A DNA stretch of 64,000 nucleotides from Iphione sp. A-MEVVRFRX5 (taxonomy: Eukaryota): assembly GCA_976226885.1 (NCBI GenBank), contig OZ320320.1, forward strand, positions 10,044,001-10,108,000, given 5' to 3'. A program made the translations under genes and the position numbers. Shown here one piece after another: positions 47,424 through 64,000 of this stretch (its first letter is position 1; each line of letters opens with the position of its first letter). The notes under the pieces were generated by a model that was not told where the DNA came from, made no database searches, and saw only the letters and a program-made list of their open reading frames with translations.

Positions 47424-47620
47424 NNNNNNNNNNNNNNNNNNNNNNNNNNNNNNNNNNNNNNNNNNNNNNNNNNNNNNNNNNNNNNNNNNNNNNNNNNNNN
47501 NNNNNNNNNNNNNNNNNNNNNNNNNNNNNNNNNNNNNNNNNNNNNNNNNNNNNNNNNNNNNNNNNNNNNNNNNNNNNNNNNNNNNNNNNNNNNNNNNNNN
47601 NNNNNNNNNNNNNNNNNNNN
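47424..47620. other. Assembly gap (N run)
   Basis: 197 Ns, upstream of the AOAH start codon. Confidence 1.
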
Positions 47621-52659: not shown

Positions 52660-53420
52660 CCCCTCTGATGTCTTGAGGCAGTTGGAAGAGAGGCTGACCA
52701 CTAGAGGGGAAGCGGGAAGGGGTCGGACAGTTGCAGGCAGTCAGGGAGAGAGGCTGACTGCAAGAGGGGATGTGGGAGGGGTCTGACAGTTGTAGGCAGT
52801 CAGGGTGAGAGGCAGACAGCTAGAGGGGATGTGAGAGGGGGTCTGACAGTTGCAGGCAGTCAGGGAGAGAGGCAGACAGGTAGAGGGGATATGGGAGGGG
52901 GTCTGACAGTTGCAGGCAGTCAGGGACAGAGGCAGACAGGTAGAGGGAATGTAGGAAGGGTCTAACAGTTGTAGGCAGTCAGGGAGAGAGGCCGACAGCT
53001 AGAGGGGGTGTGGAAGGGGGTCTGACAGTTGCAGGCAGTCAGGGAGAGAGGCAGACAGGTAGAGGGGATGTCGGAGGGGGTCTGACAGGTGCAGGCAGTC
53101 AGGGACAGAGGCAGACAGGTAGAGGGGATGTGGGAGGGGGTCTGGCAGGGGGGGGGGTCTGACAGCTGCAGGCATTCAGGGAGAGAGGCTAACCACTAGA
53201 GGGGATGTGGGAGGGGGTCTGACAGTTGTAGGCAGTCAGGGAGAGAGGCTGACAGGTAGAGGGGGTGTGGGAGGGGGTCTGACAGTTGCAGGCAGTCAGG
53301 GAGAGAGGCAGACAGGTAGAGGGGGTGTGGGAGGGGGTCTGACAGTTGCAGGCAGTCAGGAAGAGAGGCAGACAGGTAGAGGGGATGTGGGAGGGGGTCT
53401 GACAGTTGCAGGCAGTCAGG
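52660..53420. repeat. Minisatellite, 60-bp unit, ~12 copies, just upstream of PUS1 coding exon 1
   Basis: GGGGTCTGACAGTTGCAGGCAGTCAGGGAGAGAGGCAGACAGGTAGAGGGG repeated. Confidence 0.93.
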
Positions 53421-53549
53421 GACAGCTGGGCAAGGTGTGTGTTGGGGGTGGGTGGGTTTTAAGTCATATAAGGAAATCAAGACTGCAGCGGGAAATTGAT
53501 TACGTTTACTTTTTCCCCTTTTTCAGTCAGCTCATATATAGACTTCCAC

Positions 53550-53885
53550 ATGCGTTGTATCCTTTTGCGTGAAACCATAACCAGATTAAGTCACATAGTG
53601 AACATACCTAAAGCCCCGTCGCGAGGTCTTGGCTGCGGACCGTTGAGAATGTCATCAGACGGACCCCTGGTCCAGGTTGCACCAACCGAGACCCAGGTCA
53701 AGGTCGCACCAACTGAGACCCTTTCAGGGGACATAGGAGGCAAAGTTGGCTCACCAGGAAAGAGTGAAGAAGTTGTGAATCAGGAGAGTACTGGAGACAC
53801 AACGACTGCCAAAAGACCACATGAAGAGAATTCAAATGATGGACAAACTGGTGCAACTGAAGTGAAGAAGGCCAAAACTGAACAT
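53550..53885 (+). CDS. PUS1: PUS1 coding exon 1
   Basis: [42 protein letters not shown] donor in phase 0. Confidence 0.8.
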
Positions 53886-56800
53886 GTAAGTAAACAATGT
53901 AGTAATAAAATATCCATATCATAATATAAATAGAAATTCACTTATTAATGAAGTTAATTTGGGGAACATCCTATGATTAAGATAAAAATAAATGTCTTAG
54001 ACTACCATATTGATGTCTCTAATACGATCTGAGTTTGAATGCCAGCAGTTTGGTAATTAATGGAATGGTTCCGCTCGTTCGGAGTACAAACACTGATCTG
54101 TTTGCTTGTGAACATTGCTATGGTGAAGGGTTTTCTGTGTGGACAGCAGACTCCTGCTCTTTGTAGGACCGTCCGTTCTACAAGAAGAAGAAGAAGGTAG
54201 CGATGCTGCTCGTCTACTCCGGCAAGGGCTACACCGGCATGCAGATGTTAGTACCTCCCAACCGCCTACCAGCACAATAAGTATCTGTCCTACAGTCAAG
54301 TAAAGAAATACTCGCACATTTAAGCTCTAAGTTGTTTTGCATTAGTACAGCTCTTCTCCATGTTGAATTACCAGGAACCCTGGGATGAAGACCATAGAGC
54401 AGGACCTTCTCGATGCTCTCCTCAAGGCCGGCGTCGTCACGGAGGATCACGCGTCCAAACCAGGCACCAAGGTATAGTCACGTGACCAGCTGTAAATCAC
54501 ATGATCAGTATCACATCACTTCCCCATGTAACATCACTTTCTCATAAACTGAAGAGAAAGCCTCAATCAGGCAATGTCTTTTTCATGCAGGTTCACTCTA
54601 TGTAGTAGTCACTGGAAGTTTCGTTATATATTTTGCTGCTCCTCCTACAGATGGGGTTCCAGCGAGCAGCCCGGACCGACAAAGGCGTGTCAGCGGCAGG
54701 ACAAGTCGTCTCCTTGAAGATAAGTCTTCATTGCTCTGCCAGTAATGACGTTGACCTTTGAACTCTTAGCAAAGAGCAGGAGTTTCAGGTTCAATAGAGG
54801 GCATCGATACAGTGTGTATGCCGATGAACCGACGAGATGTAGAATGTCAGGTAGTTTCACAGGACATTAGAACTACAGTCCAAGACTACAGGACTAAATA
54901 GGCAGACCACAACGTGCAGATTTCATGTTATTTTTGAAATTTGCAAGTAACGACAGCACATGGACTGGCTGTGTTTACCTGCGGGGGGGGGGGAGCGGGA
55001 TGGTTACAGTTCAGCGTTCATGTGGAAAAAGTGTATTTCCGGTTCCTACATTGTAATCAATTGGGATGAGATTACAGGGATCCCTGTTGTGTAGCATATC
55101 CAGTGGAATGCCCCGAATCTGGAGACCCTTATTTCTAACCTGAGTTGTTCAGACTTTAGAGAGGGGAATCGAGTGAAAAAAGTCCTATATGGGGATGAAT
55201 TTCTGTCCCTGCATCAGTGCAGCTCAGAACTTTCCCTGTTTTAGTCTGAGTTGGAATAACGTTGCACCAGAATTACATGTAGCCTAAGTTAGGATGGAGG
55301 TGTAACAGAGGTGCCTATCATCTGAGTTAGCATAGAGGTGTAACAATGTTGCCTTTCCTAGGATAAAGGTGTAACAATGTTGCCTTTCCTAGGATAAAGG
55401 TGTAACAATGTTGCCTTTCCTAGGATAAAGGTGTAACAATGTTGCCTTTCCTAGGATAGAGGTGTAACAATGTTGCCTTTCCTGGGATAGAGGTGTAACA
55501 ATGTTGCCTTTCCTAGGATAGAGGTCTAACAATGTTGCCTTTCCTGGGATAGAGGTGTAACAATGTTGCCTTTCCTGGGATAGAGGTGTGAAAATGTTGC
55601 CTTTCCTGGGATAGAGGTGTGAAAATGTTGCCTTTTTGAGGTGTAACATAGGTGCCTATAGTTTGAGTTAGTTAGGGAAGTAACAGAAGTACCTTTCATG
55701 GGAGCTAGTGTGACATAATCAGTGGAACAACATTGGCGTACATTCTCACACTTCTACTGGTACCGTATTCACATGTTGGCACCCAGAGCGACTTCAGTAG
55801 AGCTGGCTTGAGAAGCGTCCCCGACAGGACCACCCTTATATTTCTACTGTCCTGATAGTAGACAATGTCAGACATACGTTAACTAGTGGTATTCCTTCTC
55901 ATTCTGTCCACATTTCTGGTACAGGCATATCTTGTGTGCCCAAGCTGATATTCCACTGTGTACATGCAGTCTAGGGTATATGTAATTTATATACAAGTAT
56001 ATTTTTTATATATATTTATGTAAATCTATATTTGTCTGTATACTGATATATAAATCTATATTTGTCTGTATACTGATATGAGTCCCAATTTTATCACAGC
56101 ACATGTTCGTGGATGTCCCGAATCTCCTGGAGAAGATCAACTCCCATCTTGCCGACCAGATCAGAGCATTAGGTAAACTCGTCTTTCATACCCATCCCAG
56201 ACTGGGGCTCAGGCACTGGCCGCAAGGGGTCTACGCGACAGCCCAGCTGTCAGTCAGTAAACCACAGTTGATATCAGACTTCACCAGGACACTTTGTATT
56301 AAGTATTACACCAGTTATGCAGACATTTGGAGAAGGGAGTCCAAGTATAAGTCATACCTCTCTAGTCTCTTCACCCGAACGCTTGCTAATTGTGTCTTAC
56401 CAGTACTTCATGGAAAGCCACCTTTTGGTATCCAACTGGTTTTTGATTATTTCCAACAACCTCCTCTCTTCTCGAAGTAATGTGTCAGCAAGCCTCATAC
56501 ATTATCATGGGAGAGCCTTGCCTTCACTTTGAAATTACAACTGTACAGGAAACTGTGACTTGGTTCTGTAGGGGGTCTGTTGAGAAGTGTACCATACTGA
56601 ACTTAGAGACACTTTTCTCCGTGTAAGCGAATGTAAATAAACTTAAAATATCGCTATGTTTTTAATAACTAGATTCTCACAGTTGACTGGAGTGGAGAAC
56701 AAAGTGTCCTTTGATAATGACGGCCAATCTTATCATTCATATTAATCAGCATTTATTGTTTAACAGGCATTTAACAGTAAAGACAGATGTTTCAAACCAT

Positions 56801-59800
56801 TCCGATAACCTTTTATTGATACCGATCAGGACATAGAAAGTGAAAGATGAGGTTGAAACATGTACATTGTAAACTACACTGACAAGCTGGTCATTCTCTT
56901 TGCTCAGGATTCAAGCGTGTAACACGAGGCTTCAGCAGTAAGGATAGCTGTTCCTCGCGAACCTACATGTACCTGTTGCCAACCTTTGCCTTCACACCAG
57001 TAGATGAGGTAAGTAAATCTAACCTTATCAGGATTTAAGCGTGTTACATGGGGCTTCAGCAGTAAGGACAGTTGCTCCTCATGAACCTACATGTACCTTT
57101 TGCCCACCTTTGCCTTCACACCAGTAGACAAGGTAATTAGATCTATATACATATGGATTTAAGCGTGTAACACAAGGCTTCAGCAGTAAGGACAGTTGTT
57201 CCTCGTGAAACTACATGTACCTGTTGCCCACCTTTGCCTTCACACCAGTAGACAAGGTAATAAGATCTATATACATACGGATTTAAGTGCGTAACACGAG
57301 GCTTCAGCAATAAGGACAGTTGCTCCTCGTGAAACTACATGTACCTGTTGCCCACCTTTGCCTTCACACCAGTAGACAAGGTAATTAGATCTATATACAT
57401 ACGGATTTAAGCGGGTAACATGAGGCTTCAGCAGTAAGGACAGTTGCTCCTCGTGAAACTACATGTACCTGTTGCCCACCTTTGCTTTCACACCAGTAGA
57501 TGAGGTAAGAAAATCTATATATATTCATCAGGATTTAAGCGTATTACATGAGGTTTAGGCAGTAAGGACAGTTGCTCCTCGTGAACCTACATTTACCTGT
57601 TGCCCACCTTCACCTTCACGCTGGTAAATGAGGTAAGTAAATCTATCCTTATCAGGATTTAAGCATGTAACATGAGGCTTGAGCAGTAAGGATAGCTGCT
57701 CCTCACAAAGCTACATCTACCTGTTGCCCATCTTTGCCTTCATGCCGGTAGACGAGGTCAGTACATCGTCCTTATGATTCAGCCTTGTAGAAGTGAGTTG
57801 TGATGTTTTTCTTGCTAATTGACTGATCACACACAGCGTGGCGGAGGAAGTTGTTAAAACCATGTCATTATGATGCTAGATGCAGAATGTCTGTATGGTA
57901 CACGTCATCGATCGATTGACCAATCGCTGCTTTATGTATTAATGTCAAAATAATGCTCTGCTACAACAGTTTCATGTCTGCTACCCAACGGAATGTGAAC
58001 AGTTTTGGCGTGTCTTTTTGGCATTATGATGTGATGTAGTAAGAAATGAAAATACTGTTGTAGTATCCTTTTGGCACTATGGTTTTATGTGGCAGTTGGG
58101 CAATTAGCAGACAGGTTTTGGGGGTCACAGTGCGAGTTTCTCATGCATCCCATCCAGAAATTCCATGATTGTAACTCAGTTCATATCTATTCCTGTTCAT
58201 TATGAGGAAGTTACAGCTGTAGACAGTACGATGATAAATACGCAACCTCTCCTTTTCATCAGTATGTCTTATGTATGGTTGATTAAGTCCTTGCTAGGGT
58301 ATTGCCACTTGCTCACCTAAAGCATTCTCCTGTTTTTCAGTTTGTCTTGGAGAGTTTTAAAATGTCAGGTATGTATAACACTACTCTCTTTTTTATGATG
58401 TACGTTGACTTCCTATAATTATATACATATATATATAGTAGAATCTTGTATAAAGGGACATTTTGTTGTTCAGAAAATTCACACACTTCACGCGTCGTAG
58501 TATGAATCGCCTCCAAGCTGAGAACTTCTCTACCAAATCCATAGCGGTTCCACTAGCATATGTAATAAAGTTCTGAAAAGCAATTTTTCATTATTATCAA
58601 CCTGTTTTCAGAGGAATTAAGAGGAGAGGTCAACAAAGTCCTGGGACTTTTCATAGGAACGCACAAATTCCACAATTTTACATCGGGAAAGTAAGTACCC
58701 GTAGGTTTTCATGAAGATCCCCAGTATTAAACTGTCCGTAGTAAATTCGCTGGAAATGGTGAAGAGCCACGTCAAGTGTGTTAGAGAAACTCTCAGCAAA
58801 GTTGCCTGTCTTTAAATTCCTTCTTTGGTACAATTAGGTACTTNNNNNNNNNNNNNNNNNNNNNNNNNNNNNNNNNNNNNNNNNNNNNNNNNNNNNNNNN
58901 NNNNNNNNNNNNNNNNNNNNNNNNNNNNNNNNNNNNNNNNNNNNNNNNNNNNNNNNNNNNNNNNNNNNNNNNNCGTGCGTGTGCGTATGTCTGTGCGTCT
59001 GTGTGTCTCATTCTCTCCCTCCCTCCTTATTCTTGACTTATGCATAAAGGTTTATCAACCATTTTACAGAGAAAAGAGAGGGAAAACCACAAAACCAGCT
59101 GAAATACTGTGAAATAGTATCAACTTTACAAACCCGTCCAAAATTATCGAATGTGGCTGACGGATGACGCATTTGAGCATGGACTGTGAAATGCAGCACT
59201 TGGGTAAAGATCCCATATTTATGTGTTCACGAAACTTTAGATACCAGAAAGTATCCACAGATAGAGACCCCAGAAGATGTGAGATGTTCTGACTGCTGTC
59301 TGTCCTTCTCTCGACAGGAAGCCTAATGATGCCAGTGCCCAGCGGTACATCATGGACATGTCGGTAAGCATGACTAACTCAAAGAGAACCTGGGGAGGAT
59401 CGGTGGATGATGTGCATGTAGGGCCAGCTCTAAGCAGCGTCACTCAGCCGTCCTTGACTCGACAGTGTGAAAGACGAGAAAACCGGATATTCAGTACTGT
59501 GATTCAGAGAGATCATAGAGATAAGCTGTACACTGATGCATTATTTAAATTCGATGTAAAGTTCGCCAGTAGAGTAAAGATATACGTACAAGTACATGTA
59601 CAGATAACGCCAACTCTAAATNNNNNNNNNNNNNNNNNNNNNNNNNNNNNNNNNNNNNNNNNNNNNNNNNNNNNNNNNNNNNNNNNNNNNNNNNNNNNNN
59701 NNNNNNNNNNNNNNNNNNNNNNNNNNNNNNNNNNNNNNNNNNNNNNNNNNNNNNNTTGGCTTGTTGAAAAACATGGTGCTAAGAGGCATGTTTCCCCCTT

Positions 59801-62800
59801 CAGGTAATAAATATTAGACTATAAGTAACCAGGCACGATATCCTGACCATTTGACAGTTGACTTTCTGTTATGGGAGAGAGCACAGTTGTGTGAAGTTAT
59901 GGGAGACTAGCTGCACAGTGGTGTAAAGTTACGGGGGAGGTAGCTGCACATTTGTGTGAAGTTATGGGAGACAGCTGCACAGTTGTGTGGTGTATAGCTA
60001 ATATAGCTGTATGTTTGGTGCAGATCGGGGAGCCTTTCCTGGCGGAGAACGTGGAGTACGCTGTGATCAGTGTCCGTGGACAGAGCTTCATGCTGCATCA
60101 GATCAGGAAGATGATAGGTTTGTTCTGGATGTAGTTAGAAGTGGTTTGGTGGAGCTTGGGAGGTGTCGAATGGACTGACCCTTTGCCTGTTACAACTGTA
60201 CTGAAACGTGTGATCCTGTCTGCTGGAATGGACGGATCGCCTCACGCATACACAGTGTCATTAATGATGCCATGACACCACAGGTCAAACTACGACTACC
60301 CACATACTGCTAGTAAAAAATCAACATAGGCTGTATCTTCCTAAGCCAGAAGGAACTCTTCAGATTTTAATGATATCTATATCAAAGGAAGGCCTAAGGA
60401 GGAAAATGAGCCATAGCATGGCTCTCTAGATGGCGCTGTAATGACAATTCGGCGATCGGTCCGTTGCTGCTCTGCTCACGTTGTATCATCTTGTAATTTG
60501 TTGAATAATTCTTTGTAGCGTTTTTCAAGAAAATTCACCTTAAGACTGCATGCCAATATCCTCGTTTATCTAAAAGTTTGTAGATTGAAGTGATAAATAG
60601 CTGCGTTGTCTAGTGGTTTAATGATTATTGGAGGAGTGATAACTTCCAAAATACAGGGATAATAACATCAACCATAAGTGATCATTTCTGGACGTACACC
60701 CAAAGAAAGATCAATAGTATCAAACTGAATGTCAATTTATTAGGATAAGAGATTATAGGAATTTTAGTGAAAATTACTTTTGTTTGGATATGGAGAGAAA
60801 TTTAACTAATTTTGATCACAACAGTAACACAACTGACAAATGGAATTTTTGGAAGATAAGATTAAGGATACACTGGACAGACATGCACCATATAAGTTCA
60901 AGAAAGTTCCTATCAATATTACCAAATAGATAACCAAAAAAATTACTAAACTTAGAAAAACTAAGCTCAAACCTTTCAAACAATATCTCAAGAAATCCTA
61001 CAGCAAGCCAGACAAGTATGCAATACTCTTAACTCTAAAATTAGACAGGCCAAGGGGAATTACACCACAATGAAGCTCAATCAATATAGACATGAACAAT
61101 GTAAATACTGGAAAGAACTCCGAACCCTCCTTCCTAGCACAAAGTCAAATTGACAATAGAGAAATTATATTACCAAAACGTGAAAACCACAGGTCAAGAG
61201 GAGATTGCAAACTTACTTAACACACATTTCACAGATGTAGGTAGAAACACTCAGGATACACTACCCATGGCACCAACTACATAGCAACCCAATGTCAGAC
61301 ATCATAAACAACTTCAAATACAAGTATCTTGGACTTATTCTAGACAACCTCACTATAAAAGAACACATAGTACACATGACCCAGAAGCTAAGCACCACAC
61401 TCATTGCACTGAACATAATGAACAAATATGTTGACAATAAAACAAACCTCCTCCTATACAAATTATTAGCACTGCCTCATATTGATTACCTAGATATTAT
61501 ATGGTCCACAGTACCGCACAAATATATCACGCAAATACAATGCTTACAAAACAGGGGATTAAAAAGAGCTGTCCAATTGGACAGTAGGACACCCAAAGTA
61601 CAAGTACATGAACAAACAAACATGATGAGAATTACTGAACGTATTAACCTACATTTACTCATACAAGGATACAAAGCCTTTTTTACATACGAAAGCACCT
61701 GAAAAATTCAAGAAATCACCTATTAATTGAGAGACAATTTTGCGGCCAAATTCACGAGTCCACCAGATGCCCACACAACACATATTTCAAAAACGACATA
61801 TTGCAGAATCATTAATAGAAGGAATATGACGAAAATACATGCAACACACTACGAAACAAGAAACGTAATACGGAGTTTCAAAGCTGAAATAACACAGAAA
61901 TGGAAGAATAATGACATGAACCTGTGCTAACCAAACCTCTGTTCAATCTTGATGTATAACAGTATTTAGTACTGACCTAGTAAGGATAGTCAAGAAACCC
62001 TCTCAGATAGCTAAGTTTTTCAAGCATTTGTTGCTGCTCCCCAGCCTTATTTCACAATGTATTGTACCTTACAGCACCGGCTGTAAACCAGCCATTAGGC
62101 TAATGCCGGAATGCTGTTTAAAAGCAATAAAAAAGTACTCTGTTATTAAGTGCAAGCCCTCCAGTTTCACAGTGCGTCAGTGATTGTAAAGTCTCAGACA
62201 AGACCACCAAATTCACACCAAGTGTGTCAGTGATTGTAGAGTCTCAGATCTCATTGACTTAAAAAACTAATGTCTCTAGTTGGAGCGTCCGGCTCAGGAA
62301 ATACACCCCCCCCCCCCCATTACATCAGAACCTGCTTTACCTGGCAGCGGGTGATCAGGTTATAAGGATAGGAACCGTTTTATTCACTTCTTTCTGTATT
62401 CTTGAAGTGGGAATGACGTCACACTGGCTGATAAGCCTGGTACCCTTAGTCAAATGTAGGTCAGTTTGCCTGGGGTGGAGGTGAAAGGTAGTGTGTTTCT
62501 CTCTTTGAGTCATTATAATGTTTATGTCCATAATAATCATTTGGCAATGATTTCAATGCCAACTCTGATATTATAATGAAAACACACCTAGAACTACCTG
62601 TAGATAGAGTTCATATGTCAAAATTATTATCAGTTTGTTTTCACTAGGCCTTAGATTTCACATTAGAATATGCAGAAACTCCCTGTTTATCACCCACTTT
62701 TCACCTCTGTAGGGTTTTTGCTAAATAAGAAATTTTAACAGAGGATTTTTATCTAAATACTAATGTGGTCTTTTAGATTAATACTAAAGCTACACATTTA

Positions 62801-63547
62801 TCACAATGAAGCCTTATGACACCTTTGAAATCCTTCTCAAATTGGGGTTGACAACTCTTTGTTTACACCTTGCTGGCCACAAGTGCCCGGATTGCCGACT
62901 TCATGAATACAATTACATAAATGGTACACAATGAGATCTTCCAGTCATGATCGACCTTTGCCTCTCTAAAAGCATGCTTATTGATACTGTATGTGTACTT
63001 GTTGCTATAGTTTGTACTTGATCTGTGTGCAGGTCTAACTATTGCCATCGTGCGAGGACTGGCCGGCCTGAGGTCTATGGAATATGCTTGGAGGCCTGAA
63101 AAGGTGAGTTGCTGTACAGTGGAACCCTTCTACTAAGGGCACCCTTTATAAAGGACACCCCACATTATGGACAGGTTGGAAACAAAACCAAATCTATATA
63201 TAATGATGTTTAAATACTCCTGCTATAAAGGACACCCCTCTTTACGGACATTTTTGGGTCAGCCCTTTGCTGTCTGTAGTAGAGAGGTTCCCCTGTATAT
63301 GACTTGCTACAGGAAACATACTGTAATTGATGGGCTATTTGAAGTTTGGTGACATTTAATTCTTTTTCCATCTCGTGAATGTTATAGCCAGTAAATGAAA
63401 TCACCTAGACGAAGAAAATTTTGTGCTGGGATAAATTAGGGACGTTTTGAGGAAGTTGTGGTGTGGACTTGGCATACGTTACATGTTGTTGGTTTATTGT
63501 AGGCCGATGTACCCATGGCGCCGGGCTTGGGTCTGATGTTAGATCAG
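53550..63547 (+). CDS. PUS1: tRNA pseudouridine synthase 1 (TruA family), first 12 coding exons; 3' end beyond the window
   Basis: Exons: 53550-53885, 54167-54246, 54375-54471, 54651-54719, 56103-56172, 56908-57008, 58341-58368, 58612-58690, 59318-59363, 60024-60117, 63033-63103, 63503-63547 (372 codons). Motifs: [37 protein letters not shown] (catalytic Asp), [48 protein letters not shown]. Confidence 0.95.
54167..54246 (+). CDS. PUS1: PUS1 exon 2
   Basis: [25 protein letters not shown]. Confidence 0.93.
54375..54471 (+). CDS. PUS1: PUS1 exon 3
   Basis: [32 protein letters not shown]. Confidence 0.92.
54651..54719 (+). CDS. PUS1: PUS1 exon 4 (catalytic RTD)
   Basis: [23 protein letters not shown]; the donor is non-canonical (ATAAGT). 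Confidence 0.9.
55330..55655. repeat. Minisatellite, 30-bp unit, ~11 copies
   Basis: GGATAGAGGTGTAACAATGTTGCCTTTCCT repeated. Confidence 0.95.
56103..56172 (+). CDS. PUS1: PUS1 exon 5
   Basis: [23 protein letters not shown]; starts at 56103 if the intron ends AC, or 56100 if it ends AG. Confidence 0.88.
56908..57008 (+). CDS. PUS1: PUS1 exon 6 (the functional copy)
   Basis: [33 protein letters not shown]; the only stop-free copy in the array. Confidence 0.92.
57032..57756 (+). repeat. Six tandem degenerate copies of PUS1 exon 6 with its donor (124-128-bp period)
   Basis: Copies start at 57032, 57156, 57280, 57404, 57532 and 57656; each has one or more in-frame TGA. Confidence 0.95.
58341..58368 (+). 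CDS. PUS1: PUS1 exon 7 (28 nt)
   Basis: FVLESFKMS; strong acceptor and GTATGT donor, phase 0 to 1 fits. Confidence 0.8.
58612..58690 (+). CDS. PUS1: PUS1 exon 8
   Basis: [25 protein letters not shown]. Confidence 0.93.
58844..58973. other. Assembly gap (N run)
   Basis: 130 Ns in PUS1 intron 8. Confidence 1.
59318..59363 (+). CDS. PUS1: PUS1 exon 9
   Basis: [15 protein letters not shown]. Confidence 0.9.
59622..59755. other. Assembly gap (N run)
   Basis: 134 Ns in PUS1 intron 9. Confidence 1.
59865..60005. repeat. Minisatellite, ~34-bp unit, ~4 copies, before the PUS1 exon 10 acceptor
   Basis: GTGTGAAGTTATGGGAGAC..AGCTGCACAGT repeated. Confidence 0.8.
60024..60117 (+). CDS. PUS1: PUS1 exon 10
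   Basis: [31 protein letters not shown]. Confidence 0.94.
60760..62135 (+). mobile_element. Degenerate CR1/L2-group LINE fragment in PUS1 intron 10
   Basis: Linker-like remnants (..[12 protein letters not shown].., [13 protein letters not shown]) followed by RT C-terminus [33 protein letters not shown]; AATAAA near 62127. Boundaries approximate. Confidence 0.75.
63033..63103 (+). CDS. PUS1: PUS1 exon 11
   Basis: [23 protein letters not shown]. Confidence 0.92.
63117..63295. mobile_element. Tc1/mariner-type MITE (179 bp)
   Basis: TA on both flanks; 19-bp TIRs matching 16/19 (CAGTGGAACCCTTCTACTA). Confidence 0.7.
63503..63547 (+). CDS. PUS1: PUS1 exon 12
   Basis: [15 protein letters not shown]. 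Confidence 0.92.
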
Positions 63548-63884
63548 GTAAGTCTCTTTATTTTCAAGTGACCCCTTAAGGATAAAGGTCAAGTGATGGT
63601 CTTGGATAATAATATACAGTCGAAACCCTATTTACAACCGCATTGGTTTCTGACCAGATTTGCTTTTCTGAACAGTTGAGCTAGGAACTGAATGGTAATC
63701 AGTAGATAATTGATATGCAAAGTGATCGATTTCAGACCAAATCAATTTCTGACTGAATCTAAGACCCCACTGTATAGGGTCTTTTCTAGTGTATTTTAAT
63801 ATCAATTTCCAACTGTCTGAAATAGACCTCCAAGGGATAATGGGAGAGGTGGGGTCATACGTGTAAGTCCTAAGAAGTCAGTGT

Positions 63885-64000
63885 AAACCTGCTGATTCAT
63901 GGTCTATACCCGCCAATTGACGGTCTAAATCTGCCTATTCATGGTCTAAATTAGCTGATCCATGGTCTAACCCTGCTGATTCATGGTCTATACTCGCCGA
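63885..64000. repeat. Short tandem repeat (ATTCATGGTCTA modules), truncated by the window end
   Basis: Four or more CATGGTCTA copies. Confidence 0.7.

Follow-up and report, generated by a model that had tools for sequence, protein, structure and literature searches.

A probable U2-type AT-AC intron in the PUS1 gene of Iphione sp., shared in position with a soft coral, worms and a clam

Within the 64,000-nucleotide stretch of Iphione sp. DNA analysed here (the window), we identified a PUS1 gene in which exons 4 and 5 are separated by an intron that begins with AT and ends with AC. We put the probability at roughly 0.85 that this is a genuine PUS1 AT-AC intron, most likely removed by the major (U1/U2) spliceosome and hence belonging to the class called AT-AC II, or U2-type AT-AC. 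Judged by its sequence and that of its orthologues, it is a new and deeply conserved member of this known class. Its splicing in Iphione, its U2 dependence and any effect at the level of expression are what we infer from these data. An earlier note on this DNA had proposed a U2-type AT-AC intron at this position, and the proposal is supported by the conserved termini and U1-type donor, by the length of the encoded protein and by the absence of U12 motifs.

AT-AC II introns are defined by a U2-type 5' splice site with A at +1 that is paired with a terminal AC (PMC1557818). They are extremely rare: a survey of five model species counted 24 U2-type AT-AC introns out of about 610,000, most of them in a single gene family (PMC1557818). 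A-C terminal pairs do splice, albeit less efficiently (PMC1557818), and the AT-AC introns of sodium-channel genes carry G at +5 (PMC2831892). The earlier note had taken as known that changes at A+1 and C-1 compensate each other and that rare U2-dependent AT-AC introns exist. The PUS1 intron adds an example in a housekeeping RNA-modification gene, with a range that takes in a soft coral, worms and a clam. Our literature search, incomplete in its coverage, found no paper connecting PUS1 with AT-AC introns.

The host gene occupies the + strand from 53649 to the window end and comprises multiple exons, with phases that agree across the first six (Table 1). Of the five introns that separate these exons, only the one after exon 4 departs from GT-AG. 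Assignment to PUS1 and the TruA family of pseudouridine synthases follows from the RTDKGVSA motif together with collinear PUS1 similarity over several exons. Searches were run per exon or with stop-free open reading frames, and the proteins fetched were then aligned to the window by tblastn. In a search of solved structures, exon 4 matched the human PUS1 structures 4nz6 and 4iqm (E about 5e-7) and exon 6 matched human PUS1 structures (E 2e-9); the PDB search with the exon-5 open reading frame returned chance matches only. Pfam scans of single PUS1 exons gave no match because the pieces, 23 to 41 residues long, are too short. Iphione itself is absent from the protein data, in which its nearest relatives are spiralian and share roughly 55-60% of residues per exon; they are the transcript-derived protein P0086 and the proteins of Ridgeia, Tubulanus, Owenia and Capitella. 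Ten exons of the window align to P0086 by tblastn, including exon 5, which aligns to its segment MFVDVENPLEKINENLPPEIRVMG. In the assembly (1.18 Gb in 89 contigs) the exon-4 region occurs once.

Table 1. Features of the PUS1 locus in the window and orthologous introns in four other species. Slashes mark exon-intron borders; positions for other species refer to the retrieved genomic loci.
Feature	Position	Strand	Size	Details
PUS1 exon 1	53649-53885	+		
PUS1 exon 2	54167-54246	+		
PUS1 exon 3	54375-54471	+		
PUS1 exon 4	54651-54719	+	69 nt	phase 0 to 0; catalytic RTDKGVSA motif; preceding intron ends AG
5' splice site AAG/ATAAGT	54717-54725	+		A not G at +1 (54720); G at +5
AT-AC intron	54720-56102	+	1383 nt	phase 0; AT at 54720-54721, AC at 56101-56102
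Tandem repeat in AT-AC intron	55328-55635	+		31 bp x 9.9 copies, 96% match
Candidate U2-type branch site CTGAT	56073-56077	+		A at 56076, 26 nt from 3' end; fits yUnAy
Intron 3' end AGCAC	56098-56102	+		proposed 3' splice site AC at 56101-56102; competing AG at 56098-56099
PUS1 exon 5	56103-56172	+	70 nt	23 residues plus first base of Gly codon; donor TAG/GTAAAC
PUS1 exon 6	56908-57008	+		
Capitella teleta intron	L010 1873-1937		65 nt	CTGAAG/ATAAGTG...CTCTTTTTAC/ATGTTC
Solemya velum intron	L003 22221-23666		1446 nt	CTAAAG/ATATGTA...TTCTTTTAC/ATGTTA
Lineus longissimus intron	L012 1398-1545		148 nt	ATAAAG/ATAAGTA...CTTTTCTAC/CTCTTT
Dendronephthya gigantea (octocoral) intron	L013 1505-1619		115 nt	TTAAAG/ATAAGTA...TTTTCAGCAC/ATGGTT

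Exon 4 closes with TTGAAG (54714-54719), which is followed immediately by ATAAGT (54720-54725). By match count, this donor agrees with the U2-type consensus MAG/GTRAGT at eight of nine positions, the mismatch being +1. At the other end, positions 56090-56102 read TTTATCACAGCAC, CACAGCAC stands directly upstream of the exon-5 ATG (56103), and exon 5 begins ATGTTCGTG with that ATG first. The earlier note had given the donor as TTGAAG/ATAAGT and the start of exon 5 as the ATG at 56103, and both coordinates and letters proved exact. Since both exon ends (54719 and 56103) are in phase 0, AT-AC joining preserves the reading frame. The CTGAT near the 3' end is a candidate U2-type branch site, proposed from its sequence and position, and the pyrimidine tract that follows it in the window is modest (12 of 20 in 56078-56097).

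If the intron is removed as we propose, U1 snRNA would pair with AAG/AUAAGU everywhere but at +1, and U2 with a CUGAU-like branch site that precedes the 3' end by about 26 nt. At step 2, the non-Watson-Crick contact between the first and last bases would be A-C in place of the usual G-G, and 54719 would join 56103. The same compensating A-C pair was obtained in double mutants of yeast and human GT-AG introns in which G1 was changed to A and the last G to C (PMC1557818); those mutants were engineered and splice less efficiently, whereas the PUS1 intron is natural and conserved. It provides a natural substrate on which the spliceosomal first-to-last base interaction could be studied.

The 31-bp tandem repeat inside the intron is probably neutral filler, and an Rfam scan of 53000-64000 returned no family at the gathering threshold, so neither a snoRNA nor any further known RNA lies within it. 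A second tandem repeat (30 bp x 2.1 copies, 56017-56079) stops some 20 nt short of the 3' splice site. The candidate branch site falls inside this repeat and its sequence is therefore duplicated, with ATACTGATAT at 56040 and 56070.

The same intron was sought in related species and was found in Capitella, Solemya, Lineus and Dendronephthya. Relatives came from a representative search with the exon-6 open reading frame, which gave 165 matches, and junction regions were read from their proteins; five of its top matches (P0001, P0002, P0004, P0016 and P0063) were dropped as repeat proteins that match the query at many places by chance. Genomic loci were then compared for six species, the four named above together with Owenia and Branchiostoma. 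In all four species that have the intron, it follows S-L/I-K and falls, in phase 0, between the same two codons. In each case AAG precedes it, positions +1, +5 and +6 are A, G and T, and the last two bases are AC. The donor is AAG/ATAAGT in Capitella, Lineus and Dendronephthya and AAG/ATATGT in Solemya. That four further phyla or classes carry an AT...AC pair at the orthologous position is more than chance would produce. A clear, long pyrimidine tract runs up to the AC, with no AG close by, in the introns of Capitella, Solemya and Lineus; such tracts reaching the AC give the layout of a major-spliceosome 3' end and not of a U12-type one. The Dendronephthya acceptor, CAGCAC/ATG, is identical to that of the window. 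An additional segment, GAGTCCCA, is common to the window and Dendronephthya introns near their 3' ends, and was set aside as a chance likeness, its distances from the AC being different.

Two computational RefSeq models and several mRNAs show how these exons are read at the protein level. In Lineus, XP_064630465 reads SIK-LFYNIPNL, which is the exact AT-AC junction. In Dendronephthya, XP_028391240 reads VVSLK-MVPYKEL, likewise the AT-AC junction, so the exons are joined in this model at the AC and not at the AG 3 nt upstream. The mRNA contigs of three relatives (L005, L004 and L007), which bear on the mRNA level only, join SLQ or SLK straight to M, giving SLQ-MFVDVEN, SLK-MLVNVDN and SLK-MLLNVEN. 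Transcripts of Capitella or Dendronephthya were sought among the database proteins and none was found. By contrast with the four intron-bearing species, Owenia fusiformis (L006 33375-33428) and Branchiostoma (L011 2500-2553) have no intron at this site, AAG ATG being continuous and free of any scar, which indicates precise intron loss in two separate lineages.

A very unlikely alternative, though the likeliest of the rivals, is AT-AG splicing, in which the same donor would be joined to the AG at 56098-56099. The product, SLK-H-MFVDV, would be either the principal one or a minor isoform of the NAGNAG kind. This AG lies in frame 3 nt upstream of the AC and is the usual U2-type acceptor, and some product with the additional His may therefore arise. 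Joining at the AG that ends at 56099 would add exactly one His (CAC) relative to AT-AC, as had been claimed, and the length of the protein across the junction can consequently be set against it. From SLK to the conserved IN, the window encodes 11 residues under AT-AC and 12 under AT-AG. Among about 170 orthologues scored, 11 residues separate K from IN in 23, which include all the spiralians, and 10 residues do so in a further 122, mostly vertebrates; the spacing of 12 that AT-AG predicts, and with it the extra residue, occurs in none. Counts taken by coordinate arithmetic on gapless alignments to solved structures agree: from K to the exon-6 G there are 23 residues in yeast Pus1 (7r9f), 22 in human PUS1 (4nz6) and 23 in the window under AT-AC. 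The gapless alignment to yeast Pus1 that the earlier note had given is consistent with this equality of 23 residues. Three of the orthologous introns lack an AG near the AC altogether, and in Dendronephthya, where the same CAGCAC is present, the RefSeq model nevertheless joins at the AC. Furthermore, step 2 with A at +1 needs C, not G, at the last position (PMC1557818).

Slimmer still is the chance that this is a degenerate U12-dependent AT-AC intron spliced by the minor spliceosome. In its favour, AT-AC is the typical pair of termini for a U12-type intron, the Solemya intron opens with ATAT (+1 to +4) as ATATCC does, and the genome encodes a full-length U12 snRNA (G000:C22:34617878-34618026, - strand, locus L002; 121.5 bits, model positions 1-151). 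The presence of this gene implies that the minor spliceosome has been kept and is available in Iphione, and the PUS1 intron is without its signals. The two hallmarks of a U12-type AT-AC intron, a ATATCCTT donor and a TCCTTAAC branch site that precedes the 3' end by 10-20 nt, are both missing from the PUS1 intron. Its donor is ATAAGT rather than ATATCCTT; in a pattern scan of 54720-56102, RTATCC did not occur at the 5' end and its single occurrence was internal, at 55096, and neither TCCTTRAY nor CCTTRA was found anywhere in the intron. This bears out the claim that the U12 signature is absent. In addition, the long 3' pyrimidine tracts of the relatives' introns are a feature that U12-type introns lack, and -1G, +5G and +6U suit pairing with U1. 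For the window itself, it is from the absence of motifs alone that use of the minor spliceosome would be excluded.

We consider it highly improbable that a cryptic GT donor (54724, 54742 or 54750) is joined to an AG acceptor (56082 or 56099) to produce a longer exon 4 or 5, even though in-frame GT/AG pairs exist and the gene predictors made such a choice in Capitella and Solemya. The GTs at 54724 and 54742 are in phase 1 and could pair only with the AG at 56082, for a gain of 8 or 15 residues; that at 54750 sits in a weak context (GAC/GTTGAC) and would add 11; and the GT at 54789 lies downstream of an in-frame TGA. These values fit the prior statement that the nearby GT options are weak and add at least 8 residues. 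Additions of 8 to 15 residues are absent from every transcript-derived or intron-less orthologue, and the sites are weak, the 56082 acceptor being without a pyrimidine tract.

The two predicted proteins are better explained as annotation errors. Capitella ELU03937.1 (KB302742.1, L010 1858-1990) reads SLK-ISVF-KINEH: the model enters the intron (ATA AGT = I S) and omits most of exon 5, losing about 10 residues and gaining ISVF. Solemya KAL5017922.1 (JBHNWI010000282.1, L003 22150-23740) reads SLK-IFIFFFY-MLLNAEN, the model having spliced from a cryptic GT located 4 nt inside the intron to an AG that precedes the true end by 20 nt, and its IFIFFFY is a translated pyrimidine tract. Both models are wrong at the junction because the predictor avoided the AT-AC intron, as the earlier note had expected gene predictors to do. 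The AT-AC intron of PUS1 is accordingly a concrete annotation trap, with two public models that carry wrong peptides.

That position 54720 reads A through a fault in the assembly, or through a G-to-A splice variant private to this individual in an otherwise ordinary GT-AG intron, would take one changed base, but it is likewise highly improbable: A at +1 and a terminal AC are found in the orthologous intron of four other species (four phyla or classes), a GT-AG ancestor would imply the extra His that is absent from all orthologues, 54720 lies outside any homopolymer, and the antiquity of the intron rules such an error or variant out.

On the present comparison the intron is old, with the same site, phase and termini in one cnidarian and three spiralian phyla, and with clean loss in Owenia and amphioxus. 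It probably persists through being trapped, because a change at either end alone would break splicing. Trapping has been put forward for AT-AC II introns in general, in which a change at either end alone is deleterious (PMC2831892), and deep conservation accompanied by occasional clean loss fits this picture. We therefore see in the PUS1 intron independent support for the evolutionary trapping of AT-AC II introns.

The closest parallels to this U2-type AT-AC intron are found in sodium-channel genes. Like it, the introns of SCN4A and SCN5A combine AT-AC termini with a U1-type donor bearing G at +5, have no U12 motifs and keep their borders conserved across species (PMC1557818; PMC2831892). Their U2 dependence was shown experimentally, whereas the PUS1 intron is known here from sequence; and their conservation spans human to pufferfish, whereas that of the PUS1 intron spans a cnidarian and spiralians. 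The AT-AC II intron of TAF2 is another single intron that has survived in an orthologous position across a very long span, in that case the one between human and Drosophila (PMC1557818). Unlike the TAF2 intron, that of PUS1 is seen in Cnidaria, Nemertea, Annelida and Mollusca and has been lost in Owenia and amphioxus. U12-type AT-AC introns share the terminal dinucleotides of the PUS1 intron and may be its ancestors through a rare U12-to-U2 AT-AC route (PMC2831892), although they differ from it in carrying the ATATCCTT donor and the TCCTTAAC branch site, and the relatives of the PUS1 intron have a pyrimidine tract. Descent from a U12-type AT-AC intron is a remote possibility, under which the ATATGT donor of Solemya would look like an intermediate.

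The intron may limit PUS1 output, as the earlier note proposed. A bolder version, which we regard as a long shot, holds that the intron is pre-bilaterian, has stayed frozen for upwards of half a billion years and may be retained not through trapping alone but also because its weak, non-canonical splicing ties PUS1 expression to the condition of the major spliceosome. Since the part of U2 snRNA that recognises the branch site is itself pseudouridylated by PUS1 (at Psi44 in yeast and Psi43 in vertebrates; PMC7960923), the intron could on this view be an autoregulatory sensor.

Several other features of the locus were observed. The window contains 461 N in three runs (47424-47620, 58844-58973 and 59622-59755), two of which lie inside PUS1 between exons; one or more PUS1 exons may therefore be hidden there. 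A late PUS1 intron, between exons at ~60021-60122 and 63032-63097, holds a 153-residue open frame (61241-61699, + strand) that resembles, by eye, the C-terminal part of a retroelement reverse transcriptase. Exon 6 and its flanking splice signals are repeated over 56904-57767 as a 124-bp unit in 6.9 copies (86% match), an array confined to one place in the genome, with seven matches that all fall at the PUS1 locus. The first copy alone is open and the other six contain stop codons; if the extra copies keep usable splice sites, stop-containing isoforms could result.
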